64,000 bases of DNA from contig NIVC01000343.1 of NCBI GenBank assembly GCA_002269645.1, positions 227,273 to 291,272 of the forward strand, read 5' to 3'. The notes beneath the pieces were generated by a model, which ran no database searches, had not been told where the DNA came from, and worked only from the letters and a program-made list of their open reading frames with translations. The DNA comes from Macrostomum lignano (lineage: Eukaryota). The position numbers and the translations under genes were made by a program. Each line of letters opens with the position of its first letter. Within the stretch, counting starts at the first letter, position 1. Positions 643 through 38,618 of this stretch are shown one piece after another.

Positions 643-1899
643 CCATCAAGGATAAATGAAACCTGGCTAATGAAACGTTAATAAAAAGCTAACCTGCAGT
701 GACTAACGACCCACTGATAAACTACAAAAGAATGGATGCAGTTATGTAGTACAATGATATTATTCAATTCCAAATATAGAAAGTTATGCAATGAATAATA
801 AAGGCAAATACATCTGAAATTACTTTTAAACTAGAGTACATCAGTATCAAAAGCAAAGTATATTTTAGCTCGTAACCATCGCGGTACAGTATTAACTGCG
901 GCAACTTTTTTTTGTTTAAAGCGAGAGCCATGAAAAAAGCATTACACTAAAGTGTGACCAATTATCCACCAGTACAGGCATATAAACATTCAAAGTACAC
1001 GAAAAACAGTATTAGCAAGTCTCGGATGGGATGAACTATCGCAACTGATACGGTAGTCATATTCAAATATTTGCACTAAGCTTATTCAACTGCTGAAATT
1101 GATGCATATGAGCATCCTTATTCATCGTAAAATCAATGACTATTAGACAAATTATCTCATAAAATATTTATTATTAGCAGAAAGACACGAATCAATCCAT
1201 TAACGTGGCGCTGCCATATAGATATCCATGGAAACGGCACGTTTTTAAACTCTCGTTTTCCATGAAAGTAAAATAGTACGACAGAATTGGGTAGACAAAA
1301 ATAAACTGAATCAGTACAAAACCTAATAGAAAGCCCACAGGAAACTTTCTGTTAGAAGAGCAAAGTACAAGGATTTGCCAATCGAATTAACTGGTGCATG
1401 CGGCACCCAAGTTTAGTTGCAGAAGGCACTAAGCAAGCAAAACTCTATATTTACATTGCAGTTGAACTTTTCCAGAGGCAGCAATAAAACAGCCGACTTC
1501 CAACCAGAAGACCAACAGAGAGAAATCATTTTCTGAACGGAATAAATGCAATCCAAATGTCCGTGCCACATAAAAATGTCCCTCGCTTCTGTAGCAGCAA
1601 TTCATTGCATAATCCGCTCAGCTGTGATGGGCATTTGTACCGGTAGCGAGAAATTCTGACTATTCAAATCTATATCCATTTGGCTGTCTGTCTGCCCGTC
1701 GAACTTTTCACCCGGAATTTCGCCCGGAATTTTTTGCGTTCACCCGGAATTTTTTCCTATTCCAGTAATGCAATCTGATCCGGGTGGAAATTCCGGATCT
1801 GTAACGAAAGTTTACAGAATCCGGGCGAAATTTCCGGATCAAAAAGAAAAATTCCGGAAAATAGACCCGGATCGCTAAAAAAAATCCGGTGACTGTTCC

Positions 1900-2480
1900 G
1901 GGTGCGATCCGGGCGAGTGGAACGGATCAGCACACAAATCCGGGCTAAATTCCGGGCGACGAAAACCGGATCAACACACAATTCCGGGCGAGTGAACCGG
2001 AACAGCACACAAATCCGGGCTAATTCCGGGCGAGTGAACCGGATCAGCACACAAATCCGGGCTAATTCTGGGCGAGTGAACCGGATCAGCACACAATTCC
2101 GGGCGAGTGAACCGGATCAGCACACAATTCCGGGCGAGTGAACCGGATCAGCACACAATTCCGGGCGAGTGAACCGGATCAGCACACAATTCCGGGCGAG
2201 TGAACCGGATCAGCACACAAATCCGGGCGAGTGAACCGGATCAGCACACAATTCCGGGCGAGTGAACCGGATCAGCACACAAATCCGGGCTAATTCCGGG
2301 CGAGTGAACCGGATCAGCACACAAATCCGGGCTAATTCCGGGCGAGTGAACCGGATCAGCACACAAATCCGGGCTAATTCCGGGCGAGTGAACCGGATCA
2401 GCACACAAATCCGGGCGAATTCCGGGAGAGTGAACCGGATTAGCACACGAATCCAGGTGAATTCTGGATGATTGAACCGG
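1900..2480 (+). repeat. Left subterminal tandem array (30-42 bp units, GGGCGAGTGAACCGGATCAGCACACAA...)
   Basis: Tandem units are directly visible; the ORFs over this region are repeat translations. Confidence 0.95.
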
Positions 2481-3045
2481 ATTTGCAGCCAAATCTTAGG
2501 CTTATCACAGTAGCAGAAAATTAAATAAAGAACGGGTCATTGTTCCATACATTTTCCACGACTACGAATTGAATCGAATTCGATTTAGCCGTCCACGAAC
2601 AGAAATACTGAATTCAGTTGTGCACAACTGCAAATCGTATATTTCTATGCACTTCTACGTACTTTCAGAAACAAAAAATGCTGACCTTCTGAATGTCACT
2701 CGGATGGGCAGCTGGACTTCGATGCTACCATCAACTTTTTTTGAAGCCGTATACGGTTTTATATACCTTATCGCGACATTGGCTGCTCTTCAGGGATCCC
2801 CATCGCCTACCTCTGATTGCATCTGTCAGGTGGGTCACTCGCTATACAGCTAATTAGCTAGTTAACTCAAGTCAGCTGACTTGTCTATTCACTTGCTTAA
2901 GAATTGTAAAGATCTCCGCAAAAATTAAGGAACGACTTTTGTCTCATTTTCCAGGACCTATCAGGGCTCATAAATGTAGACAGCCAATGTCTCGAAGAGC
3001 GTTTCTAATGAAATCGAATCCAGCAAATTTGGCCTTAACAAAAAG

Positions 3046-3903
3046 CTAGAAATTAATTGCAAATAAATGCGGTGGTGGTGTTATGCACTCGATCTTGGAC
3101 ATCGCCCGCATTTCACTCCTCGAGTAGCTCGCGGTCTGGAAATATATGTTTCCAGAAGTCGGCCCCTCATTTTCGGCAGCACTGGCGATTCGTCGCGCCT
3201 TCACCTGGTCCGCCTTCTTTTGCCGCTCTGCGGCTGGCCGAGATTGAAAGAGCACTGCCTGGCTTCTCGCCACGGTCGTGTCGGATTCCGACGAGCTCGT
3301 AGCGGAGATAGCTTCCAATCGAAGAACTTCAGCTTTCATCTGACGATTTTCGGCTTGAGCCTCCGACAGCTTTTCACGAACTCCGCTCAATTGATGGCCT
3401 ATTAAGTACATAAAAATGAGGAGAGTGGCGAAGCAGATTCAAACTTAAGAATCAACAACACTTATATATATACGAGGCTGCTAACGTCTTCTAGTATATG
3501 CATAAAAAACTTACACAGTTCGTCCTCGGCTTCGCCTTGGGCCCGAATCTGATCCATCATTGTGGTGCATGACGGGCATCGTGACGGCTGCGGTTGCTGC
3601 GATGGCACACGCGCCAAAGCAGTCGCTTCAATCGCTTGGGCCTTTCTATCCAAAGGCCCCTTCCAGAGAGTGGCGGAATACCGGGATCCGGTACTCTTGT
3701 TAGCAGCCGTGACAACGTGATCTGCTCACGGCTGGTGCAACTGCAAACGCCTTAGACAAACCAATGGAGCATGTACCGACAAAAATCGGATTAGCGTCTA
3801 TCTTAATAGGAAAGCTGCTTTGCATACTGGGCCAGTTAGAGCTATTTGGAACCATGCCACAGTCTCCGTCTAGACACCCAGCTGTGCCAAACAATATGGT
3901 TGG
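3046..3903 (-). CDS. Putative spliced accessory (non-transposase) gene inside the CACTA-like element; CxxC plus coiled-coil protein
   Basis: Phase-consistent exons ~3903-3777, 3721-3515 and 3398-~3049; introns GTACAT...GAGCAG (55 bp) and GTAAGT...TAATAG (116 bp), both phase 1. The joined product includes LDGDCGMVPNSSNWP, RCPSC and ELCHQLSGVREKLSEAQAENRQMKAEVLRLE. Start and 3' end are uncertain. Confidence 0.5.
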
Positions 3904-4284
3904 CTGATTTTATGCTTCTAAGCGTCAAATATGACGATAGAATCATTCAGCCCGTTGACACACTAAGCAGCTGTGATAGACTACATGCCAGTGGAAGTCA
4001 AACCTCTCGCACACAAACAGGGCGCAACAATTTTTCAATTGTCACCTGTACGGAGGATGGGCTCAGCCTCACATTACGGACGCTACAGAGCCGCCGAAAA
4101 GCAGATCAATTCACATTGCAATTTCGAGGCTTTATTACCCCTCGCTTTCCAAGAGGAATTAGCGCCGTTGACCAAATGGATGCCAGGGATTGCCTGATGG
4201 GATAGCCATTTGCTGGGGTCTGTATTCAGCGGTTTTCCATCGGAGGCTTCCTCTCAAAATCCCCATGGAACTTATATAATGGAT

Positions 4285-5040
4285 GCCGGATTGATTCCGA
4301 CTCAAGTCCCAAAATTTTCCCGGATCAGCTTCGCCCGGAACTTGGCTGAAATTCGGGTCAAGGGAGCTGATCCGGGTGAATTTTCCGGATCAGTTGGTCC
4401 GGATCACTAGGGAATTCCGACTCAAGTCCCGAAATGTTCCCGGATCAGCTTCGCCCGGAACTTGGCTGAAATTCGGGTCAAGGGAGCTGATCCGGGTGAA
4501 TTTTCCGGATCAGTTGGTCCGGATCACTAGGGAATTCCGACTCAAGTCCCGAAATGTTCCCGGATCAGCTTCGCCCGGAACTTGGCTGAAATTCGGGTCA
4601 AGGGAGCTGATCCGGGTGAATTTTCCGGATTATTTGGTCCGGATCGCTAGGGAATTCCGACTCAAGTCCCGAAATTTTCCCGGATCAGCTTCGCCCGGAA
4701 CTTGGCTGAAATTCGGGTCAAGGGAGCTGATCCGGGTGAATTTTCCGGATTATTTGGTCCGGATCGCTAGGGAATTCCGACTCAAGTCCCGAAATTTTCC
4801 CGGATCAGCTTCGCCCGGAACTTGGCTGAAATTCGGGTCAAGGGAGCTGATCCGGGTGAATTTTCCGGATCAGTTGGTCCGGATCACTAGGGAATTCCGA
4901 CTCAAGTCCCGAAATGTTCCCGGATCAGCTTCGCCCGGAACTTGGCTGAAATTCGGGTCAAGGGAGCTGATCCGGGTGAATTTTCCGGATCAGTTGGTCC
5001 GGATCAATGGAGAATTCCGACTCAATTCCCGAAATCTCAC
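4285..5040 (+). repeat. Right subterminal array, about 6 copies of a 120-bp unit
   Basis: Near-identical 120-bp period (GGAATTCCGACTCAAGTCCCGAAA...) visible by eye. Confidence 0.95.
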
Positions 5041-5309
5041 CCGGAACATTTTCACCCGGAACACTACTGAAATTCGGGTCTACACCCAGAATTCCATAGT
5101 GTTCCGGGTGAAAAATTCCGGAAAATCAGACCGGAACAGCTTTCCTTTTCCCGAAAATTTTCCGGATCATATTTCCGGATTTTTTTCCGGAACAAGGGGC
5201 TGTTCCGGGCCAAAAAAGCTGATCCGGGCCTTCACCCGGAAATCAATTAAAAATCGGGCCCGGATCACAAAATTCCGGAAAAAATTCCGGGTGAAACGTT
5301 CGACGGGTG

Positions 5310-5734: not shown

Positions 5735-6578
5735 TCAGTTCCCAGCGGCGGTGGCAGACGCGGACACAATCAGCGCGGCCAGGCGAGCGCAGAACAAATC
5801 GCAATCCTCGCCGCACTCGTCAATCAAACGGCGAGGCGCATCGCCGAGTCGAACGGCGGCGTCGCCGTCTGTCAATAGCAGCGAGTCGGGTGACGTCCGG
5901 CCGACTGCCCAGAGCTCGGCGGCCAGCTGGTCCCGAAGCCGGTCGTGGCCGCCGTCAAGCAGAGCGTCGATCAGCAGGCGGGCCAGGCGCGGCAGCAGGC
6001 GCTGGCGGACAGCCGGCCGATCGTGCAGGCGACGGCGCTCGCGCAGCGATCGGAACAGGCCGAGCGCCAGCTGGCAGGTGGCCGGGTGCGGATCGGACAG
6101 GCCGGCGCACAGGCAGTCCAGCAGGCCGAACAGCTCCTCGGGTGGCGGCGGCTCGCTGGCTGACTGCTCCTGCTGCTGCTGCTGCAGAAGTACAAAAAGT
6201 GCACAAGAAAGTGTCAGTACATAATGCGATTCCCACCCGTGAGGGCCAACCTCCATAGCACAGAGGATGTACATGCCAAACGATTAGAAAGTCAAAGAAT
6301 CATTCAGGTACACCCTGTGTGAGCGCGTGTACAAGTGCGTGCCTGCGTACAGTATTGGCGCGCTTGCGTGTGCTCAGGAGTCAGCGGGATGTGCAGAACT
6401 GCCGTCAGCGCGCAGCCTCACTGCGAATACTGATTTTCTATCAAGTTAAGATGCCGCATATAAAACTGGAGCATGGCTACCTCATTATTAAACTATCAAG
6501 CGAAGAAGCCTAAAAATTATTTATTGTATTCTTTGTAAGCTTGTACTGCAGTACAAGAGGATTTTAAATTTTACACAA

Positions 6579-6619
<41 letters not shown>

Positions 6620-6638
6620 GGCAGACAGACAAACAGAA

Positions 6639-6683
<45 letters not shown>

Positions 6684-6758
6684 GGCAGACAGACAAACAG
6701 AAAGACAGACAGACAGACAGACAGACAGACAGGCAGGCAGACAGACAGACAGACAGGC

Positions 6759-6823
<65 letters not shown>

Positions 6824-6842
6824 GGCAGACAGACAAACAGAA

Positions 6843-6883
<41 letters not shown>

Positions 6884-9800
6884 GGCAGACAGACAAACAG
6901 AAAGACAGACAGACAGACAGACAGACAGACAGGCAGGCAGACAGACAGACAGACAGGCAGACAGACAGACAGACAGACAGACAGACAGGCAGGCAGGCAG
7001 GCAGGCAGACAGACAGACAGGCAGACAGATAGCTAGCTAGATAGATACAAGTAGCTTAGGTCAGCCACAATATCAACACAAACCTCGCCACCCTCAGCCC
7101 GCTGCAGCTGCAGCAGGCGCCGCGAAGCCAGCGTTGATCCTCCGGCCGTGCCAGACGCCTCCAGCTGGAAGAACAGCGGCCAGTGTGACAGCAGACAGTC
7201 GTGCGCCAGGCTGAGCAGCTTGCAGCGCAGGTCCGGATCGCCGCTGGACCAGGCCGCCTGGCGCATCGGGCCGAGGGCCGCGCGGATCACCTGAGAGAAA
7301 TAACGGCTTGACTCATTAATCTCTGCTTTTAATTCGCTCTTTCACCAGCATGAATGGATTCAATTTTTCCGATACATCCTAAATACTCCGTATGTTTATT
7401 TGCTACTCCCTGTCTTCATTCATTCCGCTACTGTCTGTCTTCATTCATTCCGCTACTGTCTGTCTTCATTCATTCCGCTACTGTCTGTCTTCATTCATTC
7501 CGCTACTGTCTGTCTTCATTCATTCCGCTACTGTCTGTCTTCATTCATTCCGCTACTGTCTGTCTTCATTCATTCCGCTACTGTCTGTCTTCATTCATTC
7601 CGCTACTGTCTGTCTTCATTCATTCCGCTACTGTCTGTCTTCATTCATTCCGCTACTGTCTGTCTTCATTCATTCCGCTACTGTCTGTCTTCATTCATTC
7701 CGCTACTGTCTGTCTTCATTCATTCCGCTACTGTCTGTCTTCATTCATTTCGCTACTGTCTGTCTTCATTCATTCCACTACTGTCTGTCTTCATTCATTT
7801 CGCTACTGTCTGTCTTTATTCATTCCGCTACTGTCTGTCTTCATTCATTCCGCTACTGTCTGTCTTCATTCATTCCGCTACTGTCTGTCTTCATTCATTC
7901 TGCTACTCCCTGTCTTCATTCATTCCGCTACTGTCTGTCTTCATTCATTTCGCTACTGTCTGTCTTCATTCATTCCACTACTGTCTGTCTTCATTCATTC
8001 CGCTACTGTCTGTCTTCATTCATTCCGCTACTGTCTGTCTTCATTCATTCCGCTACTGTCTGTCTTCATTCATTCCGCTACTGTCTGTCTTCATTCATTC
8101 CACTACTGTCTGTCTTCATTCATTCCGCTACTGTCTGTCTTCATTCATTCCGCTACTCCCTGTCTTCATTCCGCTACTCCCTGTCTTCATTCATTCCGCT
8201 ACTCCCTGTCTTCATTCATTCCGCTACTCTATATGATACTGCATAAATGTAGGCAAAAAGTTCACCTGCGGCGCCATCTCGCGAAATGGTTTCCTAGTTT
8301 CCATAGCAACCAGCGCAAGCAGATCCAGAGCCAAATCTAGCCAGCGCAAATCTGCGGCCTGCAGCTGCATAACGGAGTCCAACACGGGCGCCAGCTGCTG
8401 CGGACCGAGCAGATGGCGGAAGGCGCGGCACCAGGCCAACAGGAGGCGCAGCGCGGGTCCCGCCAGCGTCGGATCCGACAAGACGCCTGGCGCCGATGCC
8501 AGACGGGCTGGCAGGTCGCGAAGGCGGGCAAAGTTTGCCGCTCGCACTTTGGCGGCCGATTCGCCAACGGAGTCGCAGACGGCGGCCAGACTGTCTAGGG
8601 AGCAGCGACGAATCTCGGCAGCAACTTCGGCGGCAGCAAGGCTGGCGATCTGCGTTGTAAATTTATTTTAATTTCAATTTCAAATCTACTTGGCTACTTG
8701 TAACAACATTTTAAGCTTTCGGTAACTGCCGCAATAAAGGGGACTGACTGTCAACCTGCAGCACCAAAGGGGCTTTAGCATCAAGGGGTTTAGCATCAAG
8801 GGGCTTTAGCCAGAACCAAGGGGCTTTAGCTTGAACCAAGGGGCTTTAGCTTGAACCAAGGGGCTTTAGCTTGAACCAAGGGGCTTTAGCTTGAACCAAG
8901 GGCCTTAGGGGCTTTAGCCAGAACCAAGGGGCTTTAGCTTGAACCAAGGGGCTTTAGCTTGAACCAAGGGGCTTAGGGGCTTTAGCCAGAACCAAGGGGC
9001 TTTAGCTTGAACCAAGGGGCTTTAGCTTGAACCAAGGGGCTTTAGCTTGAACCAAGGGGCTTTAGCTTGAACCAAGGGGCTTTAGCTTGAACCAAGGGGC
9101 TTAGGGGCTTTAGCCAGAACCAAGGGGCTTTAGTTTGAACCAAGGGGCTTTAGCTTGAACCAAGGGGCTTAGGGGCTTTAGCCAGAACCAAGGGGCTTTA
9201 GCTTGAACCAAGGGGCTTTAGCTTGAACCAAGGGGCTTTAGCTTGAACCAAGGGGCTTTAGCTTGAACCAAGGGGCTTTAGCTTGAACCAAGGGGCTTTA
9301 GCTTGAACCAAGGGGCTTTAGCTTGAACCAAGGGGCTTAGGGGCTTTAGCCAGAACCAAGGGGCTTTAGCCAGAACCAAGGGGCTTTAGCCAGAACCAAG
9401 GGGCTTTAGCCAGAATCAAGGGGCTTTAGCCAGAACCAAGGGGCTTTAGCCAGAACCAAGGGGCTTTAGCTTGAACCAAGGGGCTTAGGGGCTTTAGCCA
9501 GAACCAAGGGGCTTTAGCCAGAACCAAGGGGCTTTAGCCAGAACCAAGGGGCTTTAGCCAGAACCAAGGGGCTTTAGCCAGAACCAAGGGGCTTTAGCCA
9601 GAACCAAGGGGCTTTAGCCAGAACCAAGGGGCTTTAGCCAGAACCAAGGGGCTTTAGCCAGAACCAAGGGGCTTTAGCTTGAACCAAGGGGCTTTAGCCA
9701 GAACCAAGGGGCTTTAGCCAGAACCAAGGGGCTTAGGGGCTTTAGCCAGAACCAAGGGGCTTTAGCCAGAACCAAGGGGCTTTAGCCAGAACCAAGGGGC

Positions 9801-12800
9801 TTTAGCACGAATCAAGGGGCTTTAGCCAGAACCAAGGGGCTTTAGCCAGAACCAAGGGGCTTTAGCTTGAACCAAGGGGCTTAGGGGCTTTAGCCAGAAC
9901 CAAGGGGCTTTAGCCAGAACCAAGGGGCTTTAGCCAGAACCAAGGGGCTTTAGCCAGAACCAAGGGGCTTTAGCCAGAACCAAGGGGCTTTAGCCAGAAC
10001 CAAGGGGCTTTAGCCAGAACCAAGGGGCTTTAGCCAGAACCAAGGGGCTTTAGCCAGAACCAAGGGGCTTTAGCTTGAACCAAGGGGCTTTAGCCAGAAC
10101 CAAGGGGCTTTAGCCAGAACCAAGGGGCTTTAGCCAGAACCAAGGGGCTTTAGCCAGAACCAAGGGGCTTAGGGGCTTTAGCCAGAATCAAGGGGCTTTA
10201 GCCAAAACAAAGGGTGCCAGCACCAAGGGTCGCAAGACCCAAGGGTCGCAAGACCCAAGGGTCGCAAGATCACCAAGGGGCGCCAGAACCAAAGGGCGCC
10301 AGAATCGGGGAGGTCCCTGCCTCCTGGATCCTGACCTACTACAGTTGCTGGACATCTAAGCTGTGATCGAGTGCAACTACTTTTTATCGCCATCTCTCAC
10401 CGCAGAGTCCAGCAGGCCGGCCAGCGCCTGTTCAGAGTCGATAGCGGCAGCCAGGGCGGACATCAGCCTGGCCTGAGCGTCCGGCGGCATACCGCGCGAC
10501 TGGAAACCGTCGCGAGCAAACTCGGCCAGCAGGCCGGACAGTTGAACGGAGCTGGCCAGATCTGGCCGACGGGCCAGGACAGCTGCGATTAGTTCGGCAG
10601 AGCAGAGATGAAGACGGGAGGAGACTGCAAAATGGGGCATGGGGTTGGTGAAATTCAATTTTAATAGCTCATTTTGATTTTCTACAGTTTTAAGCTAAAA
10701 ATATTACAGCTGCATATTTGACCTATATATTGTATATGTCAATCAGTATTTGGCAGCCAGTCTCACCCTGCGCCTGTGCACCGCCGCAGTCGGCCAGAAG
10801 GCAGCCGACGGCCACGGCCAGAGCCGGAGTCGGGTCCTCAGGCTGGCAGGCAGCCAAGCCAAGCAGCAGGCCGCACTGAGCGTCAGCTAAAGCGGCGGCA
10901 ATGGCCGGCCAGGCGGCGGCCGACTCGGCTGGCCGGGCGCCACGCTCGGCAGCAGCCAGGAGGAGTTCGGCCAGGCCGGCCGGCGGGTAGGGCAGCTGAC
11001 GCAGGTAGGCCAGGTTCGAGCGCAGGTCGCGAAGGGCGCAGTGCAGCTTTTGAAGGTCGTGCTCGCGGACACGGGCGCCTTCGCCCAGCTGCTGATGATA
11101 GGCCTGCAGGGTGGCGGCCAGCTCGCGGGCAATGAGGGCGCTGACCTGGTTTGGGCAGGCGCGTGTGGATGATCTAATGACTTTCTAATGATCTAATGAA
11201 TTTCTAATGATCTAATGACTTTCTAATGATCTAATGACTTTCTAATGATCTAATGACTTTCTAATGATCTAATGACTTTCTAATGATCTAATGAATTTCT
11301 AATGATCTAATGACTTTCTAATGATCTAATGACTTTCTAATGATCTAATGACTTTCTAATGATCTAATGACTTTCTAATGACTAGAATGACTTTCTAATG
11401 ATCTAATGAGACTGCAGAATAATCTGATGAGATTCCAGAATAATCTAATGAAACTCAAGAATGATCTTATGGGATTCCAGAATAATCTAATGAGACTCCA
11501 GAATGATCTTATGGGATTCCAGAAAATCTAATGAGACTCCAGAGTAATCTAACGAGACCGCATAATTTTTTAATGACCCCATAATAATCTGATGAGATTC
11601 CAGAGTAATCTAATTAGACTGCAGAATAATCCAATGAGACTGCAGAATAATCTAATGAGACTCGAGAATAATCTAATTTAACACTAATAAACTAACGTGT
11701 CGTTTATAATACTTGATTGCGAATATTCTATAATGATCTAATGCGACCCTAATGATCTAATACGGTCCTGATTATCTAATTTGACCCAAATAACCTAATG
11801 CGATTCTAATGATCTAATGCGGCGACTTTAAGATCTAATACATGCATCTATGCAATGCTAATAAATGGCTAAAAACCCACGCGACAGCATGACCCTGTCA
11901 GCAAATACCTGCTCAGGCTGAAGCTGGGCCACCAGATGAAGCAGATCGCAGGTCAGTCTCAGCAGCACCTGCATCTCACTGTCCTCGCCGCCATCGTCAA
12001 GGCCGTCTAAGAAATTCTGATTGGCCCGGAATTGGCTTTTCCAATAGGCGGTGCCGGTGGCCTCCAGTAGGGCGGCACGCGTCGAGTTCAGGACCTCCGG
12101 ATCCTACGAGGATTAAAGCGTTGACTTGTAGAGTTCCAATATTTTAAACTAAAGCTTTCAATTTCCTAATACTACTTGTTAGTAACACCCTAACAAACGC
12201 AAAAAATTTCCCACCACAAGAAAAAATCATCACAAACGTGAAGTCCCCAAAACATGAAAAATACTCAAAACGTCAAGAAATCCCCAAAAACATAAAGAAA
12301 TCCTCAAAAAACATGAAGAAATCCCCAAAAAACATGAAGAAATCCCAAAAAAACATGAAGAAATCCCCATAAACATAAAGAAATCCTCACAAACATGAAG
12401 AAATCCCAACAAACATGAAAAAATCCCCACAAACATGATAAAAATTCCAACTAACATGAAAAATCCCCACAAACATGAAGAAATCCCCACAAACATGAAG
12501 AAATCCTCACAAACATGAAGAAATCCCAACAAACATGAAGAAATCCCCACAAACATGAAAAAAAACCCACAAACATGAAGAATCCCCAGAGACATGAAGA
12601 CATCCCCAGAGACATGAAGAAATCCCCACAAACATGAAGAAATGCCCACAGACATGAAGAAATGCCCACAGACATGAAGAAATCCCCACAAACATGAAGA
12701 AATCCCAACAAACATGAAAAAATCCCCACAAACATGATAAAAATTCCAACTAAAACATGAAAAAATCCCCACAAACATGAAGAAATCCCCACAAACATGA

Positions 12801-15800
12801 AGAAATCCTCACAAACATGAAGAAATCCCAACAAACATGAAGAAATCCCCACAAACATGAAAAATCCCCACAAACATGAAGAAATCCCCACAAACATGAA
12901 GAAATCCCCAGAGACATGAAGAAATGCCCACAGACATGAAGAAATGCCCACAGACATGAAGAAATCCCCACAAACATGAAGAAATCCCAACAAACATGAA
13001 AAAATCCTCACAAACATGAAGAAATCCCTACAAACATGAAGAAATCCCCACAAACATGAAGAAATCCCTACAAACAGGAAGAAATCCCCACAAACAGGAA
13101 GAAATCCCCACAAACATGAAGAAATCCCCACAAACATGAAGAAATCTCTACAGACATGAAGAAATCCCAACAGACATGAAGAAATCCCCAGAGACATGAA
13201 GAAATCCCCACAAACAAGAAGCCCACAACCCTAACAACAATGCTCAGCCCACCTGAAATGCCTTAGAATCGGCCACATTGGCTAGGAAGTCGGCCAGCCC
13301 CAGCCAGAGCTCCAGGCACTGGCACAGCAGGTCGCAATTTCCGGCGTCGGCAGTCAGCCGGGTCAGCAGGTGCAGCGCCAGCTGTCTCTGCTGCTCATCC
13401 TGAGCGCCAAGCTCGGCCAGCATCGGCCGCAGGCAGTCCAGCGCCGGTCCCAGCCGATCCTCGGCACCGGACACCTGGCACAGGTGCGCCAGCCCGGCCA
13501 GAGATCGGCGCCGGACGCTGGAAAGAAAGGCGGGCCCGAGCGGCCGCTGACCGCCCGGCTGCAGCAAACCGGCCGCGGCCGACCAGGCCAGCTCGGCCAG
13601 CAGGCGCTCCGGATCGGCTGGCGAAGCGGCGTGCAGGGCCAGGTAGAACAGAAGGTCGCAGGCGGCCGGGGAGGCGGCCTCCAGGCACCAGCAGAGAGGC
13701 GAAGCGGCCAGAGCGGCAAGAAAGCGAGCGCAAGCGATGGCAGCGTCGGAATCGGCGGCCTGACCAATCAGGCAGCCTTGGAGGCGGCGAACAGCTTGGA
13801 CTGAATCCGGTGTCGCGACTTTCCTAGTCATTTCTTTAGTTCACCTTCACTTGTCTCTGTTTACTCCGTTTTCTCTCTCTCTGTCTAGCTCAATCTTGTT
13901 ATTCTTATCTCTCTCTCTCCCTTGCTGCCTTCTGATTGGTTCTCCATTCTCGCCTCTCTCTTCAGTCGCGCACTTCACCCCTCTCCTTATTATCTGGAGT
14001 CAACCCCCCTCTAAATTAGTCATATAAATATACTTGTTTGGGCCCTGCGCCCACTTACTGGCGTATCTTAGTATTCAATTTAACATCTAATTTAGTTCTA
14101 GTGTTTTTAGTCTTATTTTCTCTACATGGCGCCCAATGTATTTAACTCCAATTAAATATCTCATAATTCAATCGTTAGTTTTTTCTACATGGCGCCCAAT
14201 GAAAAATAATTCAGTCAATACAGTAAGGCTGGCAAAGGCCATGCCATCGTCGTAGTCGTAGCCCTACACCAGTCATCTCGTCATCCCGTCATCGACTCCT
14301 AATCGTCTCGTCTCTGCTTGCCGGCCTCTCAATCGTCTCGTTGCCGGCCTCTCAATCGTCTCGTCTCTGCTTGCCGGCTTCTCAATCGTCTCGTCTACCG
14401 GCCTCTCAATCGTCTCCTCTCTGGTTGCCGGCCTCTCAATCATCTCATCTCTGGTTGCCGGCCTCAATCGTCTCGTCTCTGGTTGCCGGCCTCTCAATCA
14501 TCTCGTCTCTGCTTGTCGGCCTCTCAATCGTCTCGTCTCTGGTTGCCGGCCTCTCAATCGTCTCGTTTCTGCTTGCCGGCCTCTCAATCGTCTCGTTGCC
14601 GGCCTCTCAATCGTCTCGTTGCCGGCCTCTCAATCGTCTCGTTGCCGGCCTCTCAATCGTCTCGTCTCTGGTTGCCGGCCTCAATCGTCTCGTCTCTGGT
14701 TGCCGGCCTCTCAATCGTCTCGTCTCTGGTTGCCGGCCTCTCAATCGTCTCGTCTGCCGGCCTCTCAATCGTCTCATCTCTGGTTGCCGGTCTCGTCTTC
14801 GGAGTCGGTGCCGGCAGCATATTCACATTTCAACTCGGGCTGTCGGTCTCGTCTTCGGAGTCGGTGCCGGCAGCATATTCGCATTTCAACTCGGGCTGTC
14901 GGTCTCGTCTTCGGAGTCGGTGCCGGCGGCATATTCACAATTCAACTCGGGCCGTCGTCACGTCTTCGGAGTCGGTGTCGGCAGTCAATCTCACCGGTTT
15001 TTGTCAAACTTTCTTCACTCGGTCCCCTCCTCTCTTGTCAGTGTCTCCAGTTGTCTCTAGTCGTCTCCAGTTGTTCTTTTCATCAACTTGATTCTCATCT
15101 CATCTCATCTCTCTCATCTCAGCTCTCTTACTCAACTGACAATGTTAATGTTTTCTCTAAACTGTACTAGCCATTTACAATTAAAAATTGCTAATTTTTA
15201 AGGGGGAGGGTGGATATATTCAGTCTTTTCAGTCTTCTCATTGGTTCAAAAACTACTCAATAAAAATCTAAGTTTAAAATTCGGTCTTAATATTTGCATT
15301 CGCTCTACTGTTTTTGTATTCAAATTCTTAGTCATTATGTATTTTTCAAATCGTTTTATACACCATTTATTGTGAATGTGTTTTTCAATTTAATTCGACC
15401 TAATTCTAACTCATTAATTTCAATTGGTAATGGTACTCGAAAATTCTTGCCGGCAACGACGAAAAATCTAAGTTTAAAATTCGGTCTTAATATTTGCATT
15501 CGCTCTACTGTTTTTGTATTCAAATTCTTAGTCATTATGTATTTTTCAAATCGTTTTATACACCATTTATTGTGAATGTGTTTTTCAATTTAATTCGACC
15601 TAATTCTAACTCATTAATTTCAATTGGTAATGGTACTCGAAAATTCAAAAAATGTTCCATTTTTTGGGGGGAGTGTCGCGACTTTCCTAGTCATTTCTTT
15701 AGTTCACCTTCACTTGTCTCTGTTTACTCCGTTTTCTCTCTCTCTGTCTAGCTCAATCTTGTTATTCTTATCTCTCTCTCTCCCTTGCTGCCTTCTGATT

Positions 15801-17492
15801 GGTTCTCCATTCTCGCCTCTCTCTTCAGTCGCGCACTTCACCCCTCTCCTTATTATCTGGAGTCAACCCCCCTCTAAATTAGTCATATAAATATACTTGT
15901 TTGGGCCCTGCGCCCACTTACTGGCGTATCTTAGTATTCAATTTAACATCTAATTTAGTTCTAGTGTTTTTAGTCTTATTTTCTCTACATCCGGACTTAC
16001 CTGGGCGAGTGAGTTGGATTGGCTTAGCAATTAGGATACACGGCGGCCGTGGACAGCAGCTGAGGATCTGGGAGGCTGGCCCAGCAACTGACACTCTGGG
16101 AGGCTGGTCCAGCAGCTGAGGATCTGGGAGGCTGGCCCAGCAACTGACACTCTGGGAGGCTGATCCAGAAGCTGAGGATCTGGGAGGCTGGCCCAGCAAC
16201 TGAGGATCTGGGAGGCTGGCCCAGCAGATGAGGATCTGGGAGGCTGGCCCAGCAGATGAGGATCTGGGAGGCTGGCCCAGCAACTGAGGATCTGGGAGGC
16301 TGCCCCACCAACTGCGGATCTGGGAGGCTGGCTCAGCAACTGAGGATCTGGGAGGCTGGCTCAGTAGCTGAGGATCTGGGAGGCCAGCTCAGCAACTGAG
16401 GATCTGGGAGGCTGGCTCAGCAACTGAGGATCTGGGAGGCTGGCTCAGCAACTGCGGATCTGGGAGGCTGGCTCAGCAACTGAGGATCTGGGAGGCTGCC
16501 CCACCAACTGCGGATCTGGGAGGCTGGCCCAGCAGATGAGGATCTGGGAGGCTGGCTCAGCAACTGAGGATCTGGGAGGCTGGCTCAGCAACTGAGAAGC
16601 TGGGAGGCTGGCTCAGCAACTGAGGATCTGGGAAGCTGGCTCAGCAACTGAGGATCTGGGAGGGCAAGCACCTGGTCAAGCAGCAGCTCGGGCAGCGGCA
16701 CAGGCGGCGGCTGCAACCTGGCACCCAAAGCCTGGCACAGCTGGGGCGTCAAGGCGGCCAGCCGCTCCGCTAGCCGGTCCGGCCGCTCATCGAGGGCAAC
16801 CTGCAGTAGGGAGGCGGCACAGCGGAGGCCGGTAGAGCCGGCTGGCTGGCACAGCAGAGACTCGGCCGAGTCCAGTAAAACTCCGGCCAGATGATCGCGA
16901 CCGTCCATGCGGCTCAGGTCGGCCAACACCTGCGGTGAAGTAGTTGGCGCACTTCTGATTGAGTCTTTATTAGCGAGTAGCATTAAGCTGGTCGCAGAGG
17001 GTATTGTTTATGAGTGCTGTGCCTGCGTACAGCATTGGCGCACTTGCATGTACTCAGGAGTCAGCGGAATGGGCAGAACTGCCGTCAGGGACGAAGTCGC
17101 CGAAGGCGTTGCGCCAGGATGCCCGCAACACTTGAGATACGAGATTCAGCAAAACTTCCCACCTTGGCAGTTTTATTAACTAGAAAAGCTGGCGATCTGG
17201 CATCGGACAAGCTGGCCAGCGCCGATGCCAGCAGCTGTGCCAGCCGATGCCGACGCTCGCCACCAGCGGCAGCGAGTCGGCGCTCCAGCACACCTAGACA
17301 ATGGTAGTGCACCCAGTCTGAGCAGCCGCTGTCGCTGCTGGCAGCCGACTCTACAAATGCCAGGCAGAGATCGCAGCTGTCTGGCCGCTGTTCAAATGAT
17401 TCCAGCAGCCTCCCATTGGCGGCGGCATTGACGCCGCTATAGAATTCGTGGATAACGCTAGCCAAGTGCTCGGCTGAGGCTATCTCAGACAT
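5735..17492 (-). CDS. XPO6: Exportin-6 homolog, 9 exons, about 995 aa; exon 3 is interrupted by an LTR element
   Basis: Exons 17492-17163, 16929-16672, [16000-15990 + 13805-13253], 12103-11909, 11145-10767, 10624-10401, 8649-8266, 7290-7084, 6181-5735; all GT-AG and phase-consistent. Motifs match recalled XPO6: SVIHEFYS (cf. SLMTEFFH), LVNKTAKV (IRNKLCKV), SQFRANQNFLDGLDD (IQFRYNQAQLEELDD), LHCALRDL (LHCSLRDL), HWPLFF (NWRYFF). Confidence 0.88.
6560..7030 (+). repeat. (AGAC)n microsatellite in XPO6 intron 8
   Basis: Directly visible. Confidence 0.95.
7400..8227 (+). repeat. 25-bp minisatellite (CATTCATTCCGCTACTGTCTGTCTT)n in XPO6 intron 7
   Basis: About 33 tandem units; the three long ORFs here are artefacts. 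Confidence 0.95.
8770..10205 (+). repeat. 20-bp minisatellite (GGGGCTTTAGCCAGAACCAA)n in XPO6 intron 6
   Basis: About 70 units with two variant types (ccag/ttg) and periodic GGGGCTTA insertions. Confidence 0.95.
11165..11830 (+). repeat. Degenerating GATCTAATGACTTTCTAAT repeat in XPO6 intron 4
   Basis: Perfect 19-bp units grade into diverged units. Confidence 0.9.
12210..13215 (+). repeat. 20-bp minisatellite (AAACATGAAGAAATCCCCAC)n in XPO6 intron 3
   Basis: Directly visible tandem units. Confidence 0.95.
13811..15989 (+). mobile_element. Non-autonomous LTR retroelement (TRIM/LARD-like), 2179 bp, with apparently identical 316-bp LTRs
   Basis: LTRs at 13811-14126 and 15674-15989 (TG...CA). 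5-bp TSD TCCGG at 13806-13810 and 15990-15994. PBS TGGCGCCCAA at 14127 (tRNA-Lys(CUU)-type); PPT GGGGGGAG before the 3' LTR. Interior has no gag/pol, only tandem repeats and a ~200-bp duplication. Confidence 0.95.
16055..16662 (+). repeat. 28-bp minisatellite (CTGAGGATCTGGGAGGCTGGCTCAGCAA)n in XPO6 intron 2
   Basis: Tandem units begin within about 10 bp of the exon 2 donor. Confidence 0.95.
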
Positions 17493-18253
17493 TTGCTTTC
17501 AGATTGGATCGATATTGGGACTGGACAGGTAACTACTAACTTACAAGCATGCAAGTAACATAGGACCTACGATTTCAGTAACAATAATATCAATAGTGAT
17601 ACTTCTATATGCTCAAATGATTAAATGTTAGAGATGGACTGGATTTCGATTTCAATTTTGAATTTCCAAAAATTGACATAAAAATTGGGCCATGATAACT
17701 TCAATTTCAATTTCAAATTTCAGAAAAAATCAAGTTTTTTCCCTAATTTTAAGCAAATTTTGTGCATAAGACGTGTGGAGAAAGAGAAGAAGAGGTGCCA
17801 CAAAATAATGTCATAAGGATTTATGACAATTATAAAAACATTCATTGGGAAAGGGATTAAGGACAGAGAGAGAGAGAGAGAGAGAAAGGATAAAGAAGGG
17901 ATAAAGAGAAGGAAAAGGGACAGCAAACTCTTAGACTTAAAAAAAACACAAAGAACCAAAGTGCCAACACAATATGTAGTTGTGACTGTCAACTGACACA
18001 GCTATCCACTAATTAAACTTTATTCCCTATCGACTGAAAATGACTTCAAATTCATTTTTTGTCTATGAAGATTTCCTACAATTTGGCTTTTAAGTTTATA
18101 GTTTTTAGTAGATGGGAATTCCCTCATAGGCTAAACAAAGTGTCTAGCATGTCAATAAGCAAGAACCCTTTATCCCATCCCTGCTTTTATTAGTTACCAG
18201 TTTATCTATTTCTTAGATAGTCTATCTACGAGCGTAATATCTATATATCTAAG

Positions 18254-19657: not shown

Positions 19658-22600
19658 CAGGGGCGTAGCGAGGGGGGTATCGGTGTATCAGCCGATACCC
19701 CCAAATTTCCAAAGCAAAAATTTTTTTATTTACTTTTTTTAGTTGCAAGTGACTGTTAAGGAAGAGAAAGGTATCCGAATCGATAGAATAACAATTAACA
19801 AACGAATAGAGTGATTATATGTAATAGTATCATTAATAGCTTGTATGCATTAGAAAAACATTAAGGCCTAAGGGGATGTGTGGATCTCAAGTCATTTCAT
19901 TGCTTTCTTTGTACTCGTATAACTTGGTCCTTGGACAACTATCAACTATCAACTCATTCTCCCAACCGACCAACCGACTATTAAGGGGTGAGGGGGTGAA
20001 TGGATAACCGAGGGGGTGGGACTGGGGCGTGGCCCGTGGGCAGTCTGCCAGCTGAGCCAGTGGAATCAGTGATGAACGATGGGGTGGGTTGCCTGGCCAG
20101 TTTTTGCTGCAAAATGCATTAGCTTCTGAATTGTTTGAAAGAAGTCTGTCTTGAATTAACTAGAAAATAAAATTCAGGGGCCAGGGGATGAAGGGTATAT
20201 TATGTACATAGGAGAGAACTAGAACTAGAAGGAAAGAAGGAGGAACTAAATAGGCATGTACATTAAGAAAGACTAAGATGAGCATCTACGTCTGCCTGCT
20301 GACCCCACCATCCTGAGAAGACTAAAAAGGGGAAGGAATAAGGAAAGAATTAACTATAACCTCGCCTCCTCCAAGCCATTTATTCTAAGGCCATAAAGCC
20401 ATTTATTCTAAATCTAAGGCAGATTTTTTTATTTCTGGACTGCTACTAAAGTCTGCAAAATAGTTCATGTGGAATTCAAAATGAGCAAGCGAAAATCTCA
20501 TGGTCATGATATCCGCTCATTATTTGAGAACTTAAAGCGGTCCCACCCTAACCCTGATCCTGCGCTACTGTCTACGCCTAGTTCTAGCACTACACAGCCA
20601 GATTCATCTATTGTGTCTTGTGACATTGCTACTGGCAGTTTGCCCGACTTGGCTACTCCGAATTTAGTTCCAACAGCTCCCGAGCAATAACTGCAAGCTA
20701 CTATTACTTCTTCAAGTCAGTTTGATGAGTCTGATCTCCAACATCAAGCAGATGAAGCAGCTGCTGAGACTGAGATCAATGTCAATGACATCGGCTATGC
20801 TGTTGAGCTTTGTCGCAATGGAAAGCTGGATTCAGCTACTCGACTGCGATTCCTTAAGGACTGTTGGGTGCCCCCACAAGGGTACTCATTCCCATTCACG
20901 CTTAAATCTGATAAGGGCAATGTCCACAAGCACTACTTGTCTCACCAACATCTAACTGGTCGCAATGCATGCTTTGCGTATTCTGCTAAGCTCGGCGGCG
21001 TATTTTGCAAGTAAGTTAGAAGTTAATGTGAGTTTATTGATGTATTGCTAAATTGTACTCTTGACATCTAGATCTGGTCTTGAGGTACATGTATGGACCA
21101 CAGATACTAGAACAACTCTAGTATCTAGTATCTAGTATCTAGCATTCTAGTATCTGTGGTATGGACTTAATGCTCACTCCTACCATTCTAACCATTTCTT
21201 TCTCTTTTAGGTATTGCGTTCTATTTCTTCCGACCAACTTTGCCATCCATGGACAAACAGTTGATGCCTTTGTGGGAACTCCATGCACTAAGTTGGATGT
21301 CATCACAACAAAGCTGAAGAAACATTTGCAATGTGACTACCATAGAAGTGACTCTATGATCAAAGCCGATGCCCTGCTATCTGGAACGAATGTTGGCCAC
21401 ATGCTGGATGTCAGTTGCGCAAAGCTAGTGAAGGAAAATAGGGAAAGACTAAAACAAGTAATTGAACCAATTGAATTTCTCGCTCGCTGTGGTCTGGCTT
21501 TTCGAGGACATTGTGACTGTGGACCTATAAAAGTTCATCCAGATGGAACTATTAACTATGATAAAGGGAACTTCGTCGCGCTTCTGCAGCTTCTCGCAAA
21601 ACATGATCCTATTCTATGTGAACACATTTGCACTGGACCATCAAAGGCCAATTACACTTCCAGTGAATCACAGAATGAAATAATTCAGGCTCTGTCTGAT
21701 GTTATCACCCAAGATTTAGTAAAAAAAATCAACAAAGCAGGCTACTTTGCGCTGCTTGCAGATGAGACTACGGATTCTTCGCACAAGGAACAGATGTCCA
21801 TCTGTGTTAGGTACCTCGACATCAGTGATGGAAGTGTAGCTATTCACGGAGAGTTCATATGCTTTGTTCACGTTGAAGATTTGACTGGTATTGGGCTTGC
21901 AACAAAGCTTCTCGAGATGCTCGATTCTCTCCATATTACAGCACAACTTGTTGCTCAAGGCTATGATGGAGCTTCAGCCATGTCTGGCAAGTTCAATGGC
22001 ATTCAGGCAGTGATTCGCGAGCAGCTGGGAAGAAAACTAGCAATCTATGTGCACTGTGCTGCGCATAATCTAAACCTGTCCCTGCAGGATGCTTGTAAGC
22101 TAGATTCAGTTTGTGCCGCTATTACTGCTGTTAATACAGTCACAGTCTTCATTCGTTCATCACCGCAAAGAACAGCACTGCTTGAAAAAATCAAAGAGCT
22201 GGTTCCGGAGTCATCTGTGCATCAACTTCTACAGCACTGCAAGACCAGATGGGTTGAGAAGCAGGAGGCTTTCATCCGATTCAACCTGCTCTTCCCAGCA
22301 ATCATTGAAACTCTAGAGGAGATCAGCACATGGGGAGGAGAGGCAGGCAGCAATGCTCGAAACAACCTCAAACTTTTGCTAGACAGCGAATATGTTATTG
22401 CAGGCCACATCATTGATGCCATTCTCACCATCACCAAGCCATTATCAGAGAAATTGCAGTGTGTAGATCTCAATCTTGTTGATTGTGTCAATGAAATTAA
22501 GGCTGTCATCGATGTTCTTCGAGATCTCCGCTCTGATGATGGCCATGTCCATTACAATAAGATATTCGATTCTGCTGAGAAAGCACTCGGCGAGCCACTA

Positions 22601-23725
22601 CAAAAGCCTCGAACCAGTGCCAGGTGTCGACAGAAGCATCGTGCCAACCCCAATGTCTCCACGGCACGTGATTACTTCCGCATAGCAATGTGCAATCCAT
22701 TCCTGGATGGGATAATTGCTACTCTTGAGGAGCGCTTCAGTTCTCATGCGCAGCTTGCATTCCAGATGGCACGACTGCTTCCTCAGAGTGTTGTTGACAA
22801 AAGTTTTGACAGCGTGAAGAAATCGATAGAAATTTACATCGGACAGTTACGAGGATTAAGCTTTGTGGACGACATCGAGGCTGAATTCTTGCTATGGAAA
22901 AAGTGCTGGCAGAATGTCGATCAAAAGGACAGACCGCGAAGTGTGCTCGAGACGTTGGTAAATTCAGCTGTTAGCCTCCAGAGCTTTCCTAACATCCGGT
23001 TTCTACTACAAGTTCTGGCGACGATTCCTGTCACCACTGCAACTGCTGAGCGATCATTCAGTCAGCTTTGTCCACTAAAGTTGTACCTACGTTCTACAAT
23101 GGGACAGGAGCGACTGACAGGATTGGCCCAGCTTCTAATCCACAAGGACATGAAGCTGGACATTGATAAAGTTATTGATCAGTTCGTACAGAATGGGTAT
23201 TGTAGAATTGATCTGTAAGTACAAAGTTAAACTTTTAGACAGCAAGTTTTGATAGGCCTAGATTGAGCATGCGTAACATACATAACTAATCACAATACGA
23301 GTAGAAGATTACATGTACATTAAATGTAATAATATAGGAACAAAAACCAAACTAATACAGTAAGAGCTTGTGCATACTATTATATTCTCTATTAATCAAA
23401 ATGCTATAAGTAAGCTATACTTAGTATTCTACATTTATACTTCTTGTATTGTCCCATATGATGTAAATGTGAAATATGGAATATGGAAGGTTGGTCACTG
23501 CGTTATTTGCTTGGAAAAGTGTTGGTGATTTGATAGAAGTTGAAATAATTTTGTTTTTTCTTGCTTTACGAATATGAATTACGAGTATATATGCATATAC
23601 AAATATGTACACTAAAAGTCGTTTTATGAATTAAGCCAAGCCGGAAAAATGCACATGTAATGAGTGAAAGTAGACTGATAACAGCTAACCAATACCCCCA
23701 AAAAAAAATCCTGGCTACGCCCCTG
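19658..23725 (+). mobile_element. Full-length hAT DNA transposon (ZMYM1/P52rIPK-like transposase group), 4068 bp
   Basis: TIR CAGGGGCGTAGC(G/C)AGG at both ends; 8-bp TSD TCCATACA / TCCATGCA; encloses the transposase gene. Confidence 0.93.
20481..23218 (+). CDS. hAT transposase, 2 exons (20481-21010, 21211-23218), one in-frame TAA at 20688
   Basis: TTF-type zinc finger spans the phase-2 intron (VFCK|YCVLF). Motifs LAFRGH, LADETTDSSHKEQ (D), QGYDGA (D), HCAAH (CxxH), TRW and TAERSFS (E), plus the C-terminal hATC dimerisation motif LRSTMGQERLTGLA. Confidence 0.9.
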
Positions 23726-31512: not shown

Positions 31513-34500
31513 ATGCAACCGGGCGGGTTGTTCAATCTTGGCGGAACTAGCGGCAGTCTGTTCTCTTCCACTGTTGCAGCAACAGGCAGCAGCGGAGGCG
31601 GCAGTCTGTTCTCTTCTGCTTCAGCAACAACAACAACAGGCAGCACTGGAGTTGGAGGCGGCAGTCTGTTTTCCTCTGCATCAACAGGAGGCGGAGGCCT
31701 GTTCTCTTCTGCCGCAGGCGGCGGCTCCTCTGGCGGTTTGTTTGCCGGGTTCAGCTCAACTGCTCAGCAGGGCGCTAGTGGTTTTGCCTTCGAACCGGAC
31801 TCTAACAGCGATGAAGGGGAAGCTGACGGCGCATCTGCCCAGCCACCTGGCCAAGATGGCGCCAATCGTGAGGAAGAAACCGACAGCGATGGCAACCAGA
31901 TGCAGAGCGGAGAAGACCAGGAAGCTGAGCAGGAATACGATAATGATGGCGATGATGGGCAGGATGATGAAGAAGCCCAGGATATCGAAGAGGATAATTC
32001 TAGCGCTAAATCGGCCACTGAAGGCGACGAAGCTGAGGACAATGAAGATGAAGATACGGAGAAAGACACAGAAGACAGCAATGGAAACAGCGCCAGCGAA
32101 GGCAGTGGCGGCAGCAGCAGCAGTAAGCAAGCCGCGGAGCCAAGGCGACTGGCTATAAAGCGACCGGCCGACCGGGTGCAGCTTGACCAGATTAACGAGG
32201 ACCGAACTGAAGAGACCGATTTTGTTGGCGATCTGCGTCAGCGGATTAAAATTAGTCGGCGAACAAGCGGCAACGAGACTGCTCAGCAGCAGCCGCAGCA
32301 GTCCAGCACTTCTATAGTGTTGCGCAATCTGCCAGCCGAGTTAAACGCTGACGAGCCGCTGCGTCGCCTATTCAAGGGCGTCATCCGGGTGTACGCTAAC
32401 TGCGCCAAATGTCAGGCTATTTTACACTTTGACAGCGCAGCCGCCGTTGATGCTGCTATGGAAAAGGCCTCGTCGGCCCGCCTGCGAATCCGATGCCCCA
32501 ACTTGGAGGCATTTCGACGTCGCCTGCCCGGTGGTGGAAGCGCCACCGCGGCGCCGGCGGCCGTGTCCGCGCCGGCACAGGCGCCAACTATCAGCGCCTC
32601 CTCGTTGGCGCTGCCAGCGTCGCAGAGCTTGGCAGATCGAATCCGAGTGCTGGAATCCGTAGAGCGGCAGCTCAGAGTCAAGCTGGGCAAATCTGGCGCC
32701 GCTGTGTCGGCCACCTGCCAGGACATGTGTCCGGAGAAGGAGCGCTATCTGCGCGAGGATCGGCATCGAGTGCACTCGTTCGAGGCGGCGCCGGGCCGGC
32801 CAGGCGTGATGGACCCGGCCAGGGCCGTCAAGGAGTACTCGCGCTCCGCTGCTGATCAGGAGGCTCCGCTGCCCCACGAGCTCCGCCCCTTGCCTGTGCT
32901 GCAGAGGACTCTGCTATATCTGTCTACTTGTATTGCTGATATTGGCGATCGAGAGGGGCGCTGGCAGGAATGGTGCGTTTGGTTTATTTCATTCAATATT
33001 TTTAAAGCTGTTGATGCTAGTGCTAATCTCGTGAATGATAATGATAAATGCTTATCCTAGTTGCTAGATGCTTATCCTGGTTGATAGATGCTTACCTAGG
33101 TTGTTAGATGCTTATCCTTGTTGCTCTAGATGCTTATCCTGGTTGCTAGATGCTTATCCTGGTTGCTAGATGCTTATCCTGGTTGATAGATGCTTACCTG
33201 AGTTGTTAGATGCTTATCCTTGTTGCTCTAGATGCTTATCCTGGTTGCGCTAGATGCTTATCTTATCCTGGTTGCGCTAGATGCTTATCCTGGTCGCTAG
33301 ATGCTTATCCTGGTTGCTAGATGCTTATCCTGGTTGCGCTAGATGCTTATCCTGGTCGCTAGATGCTTATCCTGGTTGCTAGATGCTTATCCTGGTTGCG
33401 CTAGATGCTTATCCTGGTCGCTAGATGCTTATTCTGGTTGCTAGATGCTTATCCTGGTTGCTAGATGCGTATCCTCTAAATGCTTATGCTGAACATATTC
33501 TGGTTGATATACGCTCGTACTATACGGTAAAGGTTAGATCCTAAATGTGCCTACAACCCCAAACGCCAAAGCCTGACACTAACTAGCTAATTGTGTTACT
33601 CCCGCTGTGCCCCGACAGGTACGAATTCCTATGGGATCGAACTCGCGCTATTCGCAAAGAGGTGACTCAACAGCGGCTGTGCAGCCCCGGCGCAGCCGAG
33701 CTGGTCGAACGCTGCGCCAGATTCCACGTGTACGCCGGCGCCCGCATGGTCGGCATGCCAGCCGACGTATTCGATGAGAAAATCAATAATGAAAATCTAA
33801 GTGTCTGCAGACTCTGCGCGAGCTCTACAGCGACTTGTCTGGCCAGTGTCCAAACGAGAGCGAATTCCGAGCCTATATGATCCTCATGAAGCTCAATGAT
33901 CCCAACGTACTAGACGAAGTGCATCAGCTGTCCGCTGACGTTCGCGCCTCTCCGCAGGTTCGTGCAAATTGTGTAGCGCTTTAATGTCATTCTCAGGCAG
34001 GCGGCTGTACACCCTGTCCGAGTGCTGCAGAATCGTAAGAGTGATTCTGTGATCTCAGTGATCTCAACTCAACTCAACTCAGTGATTCTGCAGCCACTCT
34101 AGCGCGCCTCAGACACGACTCTACGACCACCGTAGTCATTAAAGAAGCGCCCCAAAGAGTCGTTTCAAATTTGCAGACAATGAAACGCCTCAAATTGACT
34201 TTTTGATGACTTGTACCCTGGCATCTCGTCGTTTTTGAGTCGTCTAGAGTAACTTCATTTTTATCTTCTTATCTGCCTTACCTGTACCGACTCTGGGACG
34301 CTTCTTGGCCTAGGTACCGTTTTCATCGGGATGGACATGCTTTTAATGTATTTTCCTCCATTCAAACTCGCAGGTTCGTCTGGCGCTTCGGGCCTTCTTC
34401 GCGCTGTCTAGCAACAACTATGTTGCTTTCTTTCGCGCCGTCCACCGGGCCGAGTTCCTGTCCGCCTGCCTGCTGTTGCGCTACTTCACCCAGGCCCGCA

Positions 34501-38107: not shown

Positions 38108-38253
38108 TATATTATAGAATAAAAAAACTATGATAGTAACTGCATTCTACTTCAAGTAGTATCCCATCAACCCTGCGGACTTTTTATGCCTAGCTAGTCG
38201 CCACTCTATTCGGCAGCCAGCTGTGTATACACGTGCCTTCATCAACCGTTGCC

Positions 38254-38586: not shown

Positions 38587-38618
<32 letters not shown>

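Follow-up and report, generated by a model that had tools for sequence, protein, structure and literature searches.

Retroelements of the TRIM (terminal-repeat retrotransposon in miniature) and LARD (large retrotransposon derivative) type, among them ta-TRIM of taeniid tapeworms (PMC4558846), keep their long terminal repeats (LTRs), target-site duplication (TSD), primer-binding site (PBS) and polypurine tract (PPT), lack gag and pol, and have to be mobilized in trans by an autonomous element. LTR elements make up ~21% of the genome of the flatworm Macrostomum lignano, for which a '2-kb long LTR retrotransposon' has been mentioned (PMC5730564). The Ty3/Mdg4, Bel/Pao and Ty1/Copia families described from this animal have LTR promoters with a TATA box and were mined from reverse transcriptase (RT) sequences (PMC12801592). 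A catalogue seeded in this way cannot list gene-less elements such as the one reported here, an LTR element that interrupts one copy of the exportin-6 gene (XPO6) in a 64,000-nt stretch of M. lignano contig NIVC01000343.1 (assembly Mlig_3_7). This stretch is called the window, and all coordinates refer to it.

M. lignano DV1 is a neopolyploid with ~85% of its genome in three paralogous copies. The divergence between these copies is 2.2% in single nucleotide polymorphisms (SNPs) genome-wide and 1.1% in coding sequence (CDS), and indels dominate (PMC10733133). The XPO6 locus fits this indel-dominated divergence of the three subgenomes and is a typical instance of the exonic transposon alleles that are buffered by duplication in young polyploids, with one copy disrupted and the others intact. 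It also resembles recursive splice sites and transposon-driven intron gain in that the acceptor of the interrupted exon abuts a perfect donor and 2.2 kb has been inserted before the downstream AGs. It differs from these systems, however, in that the motif is already present in the intact copies, next to a 0.67-kb intron where recursive splicing is unexpected, and the nearest acceptor, TTCAG, breaks the frame. The explanation we favor with some confidence is that a recent insertion of a non-autonomous LTR element most likely created a fresh loss-of-function copy of XPO6 that is buffered by two intact copies.

An LTR element interrupts exon 3 in one of three gene copies

The host gene runs on the minus strand. 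With the element and one TSD removed it consists of nine GT-AG-bounded exons that encode a 995-aa open reading frame (ORF). The parts of the gene are:

17163-17492, minus strand, coding exon 1, starting MSEIAS...
16672-16929, minus strand, coding exon 2, ending ...LLLDQ in phase 0
16001-16671, minus strand, intron 2, nearly all a 28-bp minisatellite (16054-16663, 22 copies)
15990-16000, minus strand, first 11 nt of coding exon 3 (GTAAGTCCGGA), with the acceptor AG at 16002-16001
13253-13805, minus strand, remaining 553 nt of coding exon 3, with the donor CAG|GTGGGC at 13253/13252
12103-11909, 11145-10767, 10624-10401, 8649-8266, 7290-7084 and 6181-5735, minus strand, coding exons 4-9, all intact

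A full-length protein search with this model returned a 998-aa 'hypothetical protein BOX15_Mlig018760g1 [Macrostomum lignano]' (P0001), to which its identity rounds to 100%. The 90% cluster of P0001 contains two further GenBank proteins, P0002 and P0003, and the three proteins belong to three loci:

L001, contig NIVC01000342.1, protein P0001, 998 aa
L002, contig NIVC01000343.1, protein P0002, 668 aa; the CDS of the model starts at an internal ATG (13421-13423, minus strand)
L003, contig NIVC01000202.1, protein P0003, 998 aa

The window and L002 agree at all 23,423 shared bases, and P0002 (BOX15_Mlig014829g12, PAA85163.1) is the GenBank model of the interrupted gene itself; the final 668 aa of the nine-exon model equal P0002 exactly. 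Genome-guided assembly of RNA-seq data with StringTie, TACO and TBONE, followed by ORF calling in TransDecoder, underlies the GenBank annotation of the assembly (PMC5730564). No mention of the gene IDs Mlig014829, Mlig018760 or Mlig007834 was found in searchable paper text. The introns of the gene are largely minisatellites with 28-bp, 20-bp, ~25-bp and (CTGT)n-type units (16054-16663, 12230-13221, 7400-8230, 6520-7040 and others), whose copy numbers vary among the three paralogous loci.

The element lies 11 nt inside coding exon 3, downstream of the acceptor CAG|GTAAGT. Joining its flanks with one TSD gives minus-strand CAG|GTAAGTCCGGATTCAGTCC, the start of a 564-nt in-frame exon encoding VSPDSVQAV.... 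A reading of the window made from the sequence alone (the sequence-only reading) had arrived at the same position and the same restored exon, and had proposed that the assembly be searched for an uninterrupted paralog. Two such paralogs exist, L001 and L003, and both carry the exon uninterrupted. Each has the exact empty site CCAGGTAAGTCCGGATTCAGTCCAAGC, where TCCGG occurs once and the LTR is missing, and BLAST alignments of the window to both loci stop exactly at 15989 and 13810. Without the element, exon 3 of the window copy is identical to that of L003 at 564/564 positions. Applied to L001 and L003, the exon coordinates give spliced CDS whose translations equal P0001 and P0003 exactly, including the LLLDQ|VSPDSVQAV junction; an in-frame TAA lies upstream of CAG|GTA, and exon 2 ends in phase 0. 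Since the RNA-seq-guided models of both intact paralogs use the CAG|GTAAGT acceptor, the element is exonic and not intronic.

The element is young and gene-less

The element proper spans 13811-15989 (2,179 bp), with its sense strand on the plus strand and antisense to the host gene. The sequence-only reading had drawn its limits slightly too wide, at 13801-16003, and had rightly taken it for a young LTR element. The two LTRs are identical (316/316) and bounded by TG...CA. Its features are:

13806-13810, no strand, left TSD, TCCGG
13811-14126, plus strand, 5' LTR, 316 bp, TGTCGCG...CTCTACA
14127-14138, plus strand, putative PBS TGGCGCCCAATG, directly after the 5' LTR
14301-14794, plus strand, internal minisatellite, 30/23-bp unit, ~18 copies
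14774-14984, plus strand, internal minisatellite, 56-bp unit, 3.8 copies
15262-15646, plus strand, internal 200-bp tandem duplication, 1.9 copies, 100% identical
15571/15371 (AATAAA) and 15594/15394 (ATTAAA), minus strand, poly(A) signals in the 200-bp repeats, on the gene strand
15666-15673, plus strand, putative PPT GGGGGGAG, abutting the 3' LTR
15674-15989, plus strand, 3' LTR, 316 bp
15990-15994, no strand, right TSD, TCCGG

The putative PBS has the form expected of a tRNA primer-binding site and is presumably close to the complement of a tRNA-Lys 3' end; no tRNA genes were found in the window. The last 11 nt of the LTR and the PBS (TTTTCTCTACATGGCGCCCAATG) are doubled, at 14116-14138 and 14179-14201, 63 bp apart, which gives two candidate PBSs. 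Tandem repeats account for ~1.07 kb of the 1.55-kb interior. No ORF of at least 50 aa in the element has a Pfam domain, and gag and pol are absent; no Rfam family was detected in 13000-17600. The plus strand of the LTR contains an inverted CCAAT at 13935 and the TATA signal TATAAATA at 14023, and a motif scan found no heat-shock element in the LTR. No further copies or solo LTRs of the element occur in the window, L001 or L003 (~150 kb in all).

The element is a structurally complete, gene-less, non-autonomous LTR retrotransposon of the TRIM/LARD-like kind. It shares with ta-TRIM the LTRs and TSD, the lack of gag and pol, a length below 4 kb and a flatworm host, and its putative PBS and PPT lie at the expected positions. 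The likeness is one of structure, and at 2.18 kb with a 1.5-kb minisatellite interior the element falls between classic TRIMs and LARDs in size. The absence of RT and of a heat-shock element in the LTR sets it apart from the LTR families catalogued in the same host (PMC12801592).

The three XPO6 CDS differ by 19-23 nt of ~2,985, distributed as follows:

window and L001, 16 synonymous and 4 non-synonymous differences
window and L003, 17 synonymous and 2 non-synonymous differences
L001 and L003, 17 synonymous and 6 non-synonymous differences

Majority polarization assigns 8 synonymous (codons 444-983) and 0 non-synonymous private changes to the window copy. In the last exon of this copy (5735-5760), an in-frame deletion of 9 nt has shortened the C-terminal Ala run by three codons, to SATAAGN compared with SATAAAAAGN in both paralogs. 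The LTRs differ at 0/316 positions whereas the introns and flanks of the paralogs have diverged by 2-4%, which argues that the insertion is much younger than the subgenome split.

The interrupted gene encodes a divergent exportin-6

The assignment to XPO6 made by the sequence-only reading is borne out by Pfam, by phmmer and by alignment. A precomputed match to PF26714 (TPR_XPO6_C) exists for P0001, P0002 and P0003; the domain was not detected by a local Pfam scan of the gene's protein. With P0001 as the query, phmmer retrieved no more than 11 other matches from 1.84 billion representatives. With generic labels (hypothetical, uncharacterized, domain-only) set aside, all named matches are exportin-6, from Aplysia (E = 8e-15), Harmonia, Clonorchis, Dinothrombium and Bacillus rossius. 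MAFFT places the worm sequence PPPVPLP opposite the XPO6 motif TPPPSPT, and identity to Aplysia exportin-6 is ~20-30% per exon.

The importin-beta N-terminal (RanGTP-binding) domain was searched for without an IBN_N or Xpo1 Pfam match at E < 1, and a fragment, P0005, is labeled 'Xpo1 domain-containing' in UniRef. A PDB sequence search and a local Pfam search of the gene model yielded no useful match. A word-indexed protein search with the N-terminal 384 aa returned no match, and one with the full-length query matched M. lignano proteins; Ala/Leu low-complexity words probably filled the candidate list of the N-terminal search. The protein matches and the failure of local Pfam to detect IBN_N or Xpo1 support the identification of the product as a very divergent exportin-6.

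Predicted consequences of the insertion

The likely course of events can be outlined from these features. A gene-less 2.18-kb LTR element integrated recently and in antisense orientation 11 nt past the exon 3 acceptor of one XPO6 copy, leaving the native acceptor untouched. The default transcript would then continue past exon 2 into antisense sequence of the 3' LTR, where the frame reads VSPDVEKIRLKTLELN* and stops after 16 codons, as the sequence-only reading had found. Canonical poly(A) signals follow ~430 nt farther along. Such a transcript would be non-productive, and the interrupted copy would be unable to make full-length exportin-6. The loss of the window copy would be tolerated because the copies on NIVC01000342.1 and NIVC01000202.1 are intact, encode 998-aa proteins and would compensate. 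With three paralogous copies for ~85% of the genome, the interrupted copy would be redundant, and the organism-level consequence of the insertion is probably nil given that L001 and L003 are intact.

Two further features bear on how the gene might still be expressed:

13760-13761, minus strand, AG of another phase-0 acceptor candidate, GGTCAG|GCC, with the exon start at 13759, 57 nt further on
13829-13831, minus strand, ATG in the antisense 5' LTR in frame with exon 3 (MTRKVATPDSVQAV...), ORF 13244-13831

The exon 3 acceptor carries the recursive-splice motif AG|GTAAGT, and CAG|GTAAGT matches the donor consensus at 9/9 positions, which makes it much stronger than the gene's own donors. The sequence-only reading had noted this perfect donor and the frame-shifting loss of 16 nt that follows from pairing GTAAGT with the TTCAG after the element, and both points hold on direct reading. 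Downstream, no other phase-0 AG than that of GGTCAG|GCC can be reached without crossing a stop, and use of this site would delete 19 codons in frame. Simple consensus scans, which are unable to discriminate splicing outcomes, found no strong acceptors inside or just after the antisense element. A 234-aa fragment, P0004 (MetaClust UPI0007A1465F), starts with AADSD at 13759, right after GGTCAG|, and ends with exon 4; it may derive from a gene prediction on a contig with the same insertion.

The ATG at 13831 is in frame with exon 3, as had been claimed, and the product of its ORF has no exact match in a protein look-up. The TATA and CCAAT signals of the LTR are directed away from the downstream exons, and nothing supports the antisense LTR end as a promoter for this ATG. 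The P0002 model does not prove expression of the window copy, because the exons are 98.4-100% identical among the copies and 93% of genomic read pairs multi-map in the M. lignano genome (PMC10733133). The sequence-only reading, which treated the locus as an XPO6 allele, was right that the gene is interrupted, yet it is one of three subgenomic copies, two of them intact. That reading, whose statements on the sequence all hold, overlooked the three copies, the element's want of coding capacity, the direction of its promoter and the P0002 start at ATG 13423.

Alternative explanations

Removal of the element within an enlarged intron 2, with GGTCAG|GCC as the acceptor, would yield exportin-6 lacking 19 residues (VSPDSVQAVRRLQGCLIGQ), a rescue that we consider unlikely. 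Splicing could proceed directly from the exon 2 donor or recursively through the regenerated CAG|GTAAGT, whose 9/9 match far exceeds the gene's own donors, and the acceptor is unique in its phase and freedom from stops. The missing residues would fall in a length-variable, unconserved XPO6 loop that separates the PPPSP motif from the following conserved helix, the older fragment model P0004 begins exactly at AADSD, and the window copy shows no non-synonymous decay. Against this route, the native acceptor, intact together with its branch-point region, would be a competitor, the cryptic site lacks a good pyrimidine tract and even a relaxed scan missed it, and P0002 differs from the 976-aa product that the route predicts. 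A stronger form of the proposal is that insertion behind the pre-existing AG|GTAAGT made a new spliceable intron and a functional exportin-6 minus the 19 loop residues. This is a distinctly improbable outcome that would, if true, show a transposon-driven intron gain and the shift of an exon boundary caught in progress in a neopolyploid animal. An N-truncated exportin translated from the downstream exons is also doubtful. It could start at ATG 13831 (~804 aa), at the annotated ATG 13423 (668 aa), or after spliced-leader trans-splicing with a leader ending in ATG, and it would be without the N-terminal HEAT repeats, the part with which importin-beta family members bind RanGTP. The in-frame ATG 13831 and the start of the P0002 model at 13423 are consistent with such a product. 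The TATA and CCAAT signals, however, face away on the plus strand and no antisense promoter is evident, longest-ORF calling on a transcript containing ATG 13831 would give ~804 aa and not 668, neither candidate acceptor matches the trans-splice motif YTNCAG, and P0002 may be an artifact of multi-mapping reads and ORF calling.

The two remaining explanations were rejected on the empty-site and paralog annotation evidence. The GTAAGT at 16000 resembles a donor and a TTCAG follows the element, so that the true exon 3 might lie downstream, or a separate exon might end at 16001, with the element merely intronic and the gene unaffected. This is very improbable: GTAAGTCCGGATTCAG is contiguous in both element-free copies and encodes VSPDSV in their RNA-guided models, an intron of 16 nt is impossible, and the GTAAGT...TTCAG pair breaks the frame. 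Misjoining of a repeat into the contig is hardly credible even in an assembly as redundant and repeat-rich as Mlig_3_7 (PMC5730564, PMC10733133). The 5-bp TSD is perfect, the LTR termini are complete, and the putative PBS and PPT are correctly placed; misassembly does not yield a TSD with intact LTR ends, and the contig is further marked by SNPs of its own and by another private insertion.

The sequence-only reading had named three outcomes, a null allele, rescue at a cryptic in-frame acceptor and an N-truncated protein. The structure of the insertion is close to certain; for its effect, which is inferred, loss of function is the most likely state of the window copy on the sequence evidence, and several points weigh against it. 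The 668-aa GenBank model P0002 could reflect real transcription of the downstream exons, and could equally stem from multi-mapping reads of the 99%-identical paralogs. The lack of any non-synonymous change in the window copy is also expected under continued selection, and productive splicing around the element may still occur.

Genomic neighborhood

A second transposon insertion private to this gene copy is a 3.6-kb element at 1695-5307 that is absent from L001 and L003. It has 42-nt terminal inverted repeats (88% complementary) and internal sub-repeats and is embedded in a (GACA)n tract ~430 bp past the XPO6 stop codon. An intact 685-aa ORF at 21161-23218 (plus strand), ~3.7 kb upstream of the XPO6 start, encodes a hAT-family transposase with DUF4371 and hAT dimerization domains. 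No alignment of at least 300 bp to this stretch is among the matches listed for L003, and its product has no exact match in a protein look-up. ORFs at 51476-52940 (plus strand) have weak RT_RNaseH and tyrosine-recombinase (Phage_integrase) matches, both below the Pfam cut-offs, which suggests a DIRS-like retroelement remnant. ORFs and Pfam matches in 31513-50766 identify as neighboring genes an LSm-domain protein (38233-38757), a PHD-finger protein (40387-41319) and a secreted Frizzled-domain protein (49244-49795). No Pfam match was obtained for two large ORFs rich in Ala (31513-33060 and 34476-36896).

Implications

The XPO6 insertion is otherwise an ordinary transposon insertion, by a kind of element already known in flatworms. 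As a case of retrotransposition in M. lignano, a laboratory model, it is clean, recent and datable, with identical LTRs and empty sites in two sister subgenomes. PAA85163.1 (668 aa) is to be read as a truncated model of the transposon-disrupted copy and not as a distinct short exportin, and designs for XPO6 knock-out or RNAi in M. lignano must allow for three copies. The locus is an example of the early loss of one of three subgenomic copies after whole-genome duplication.

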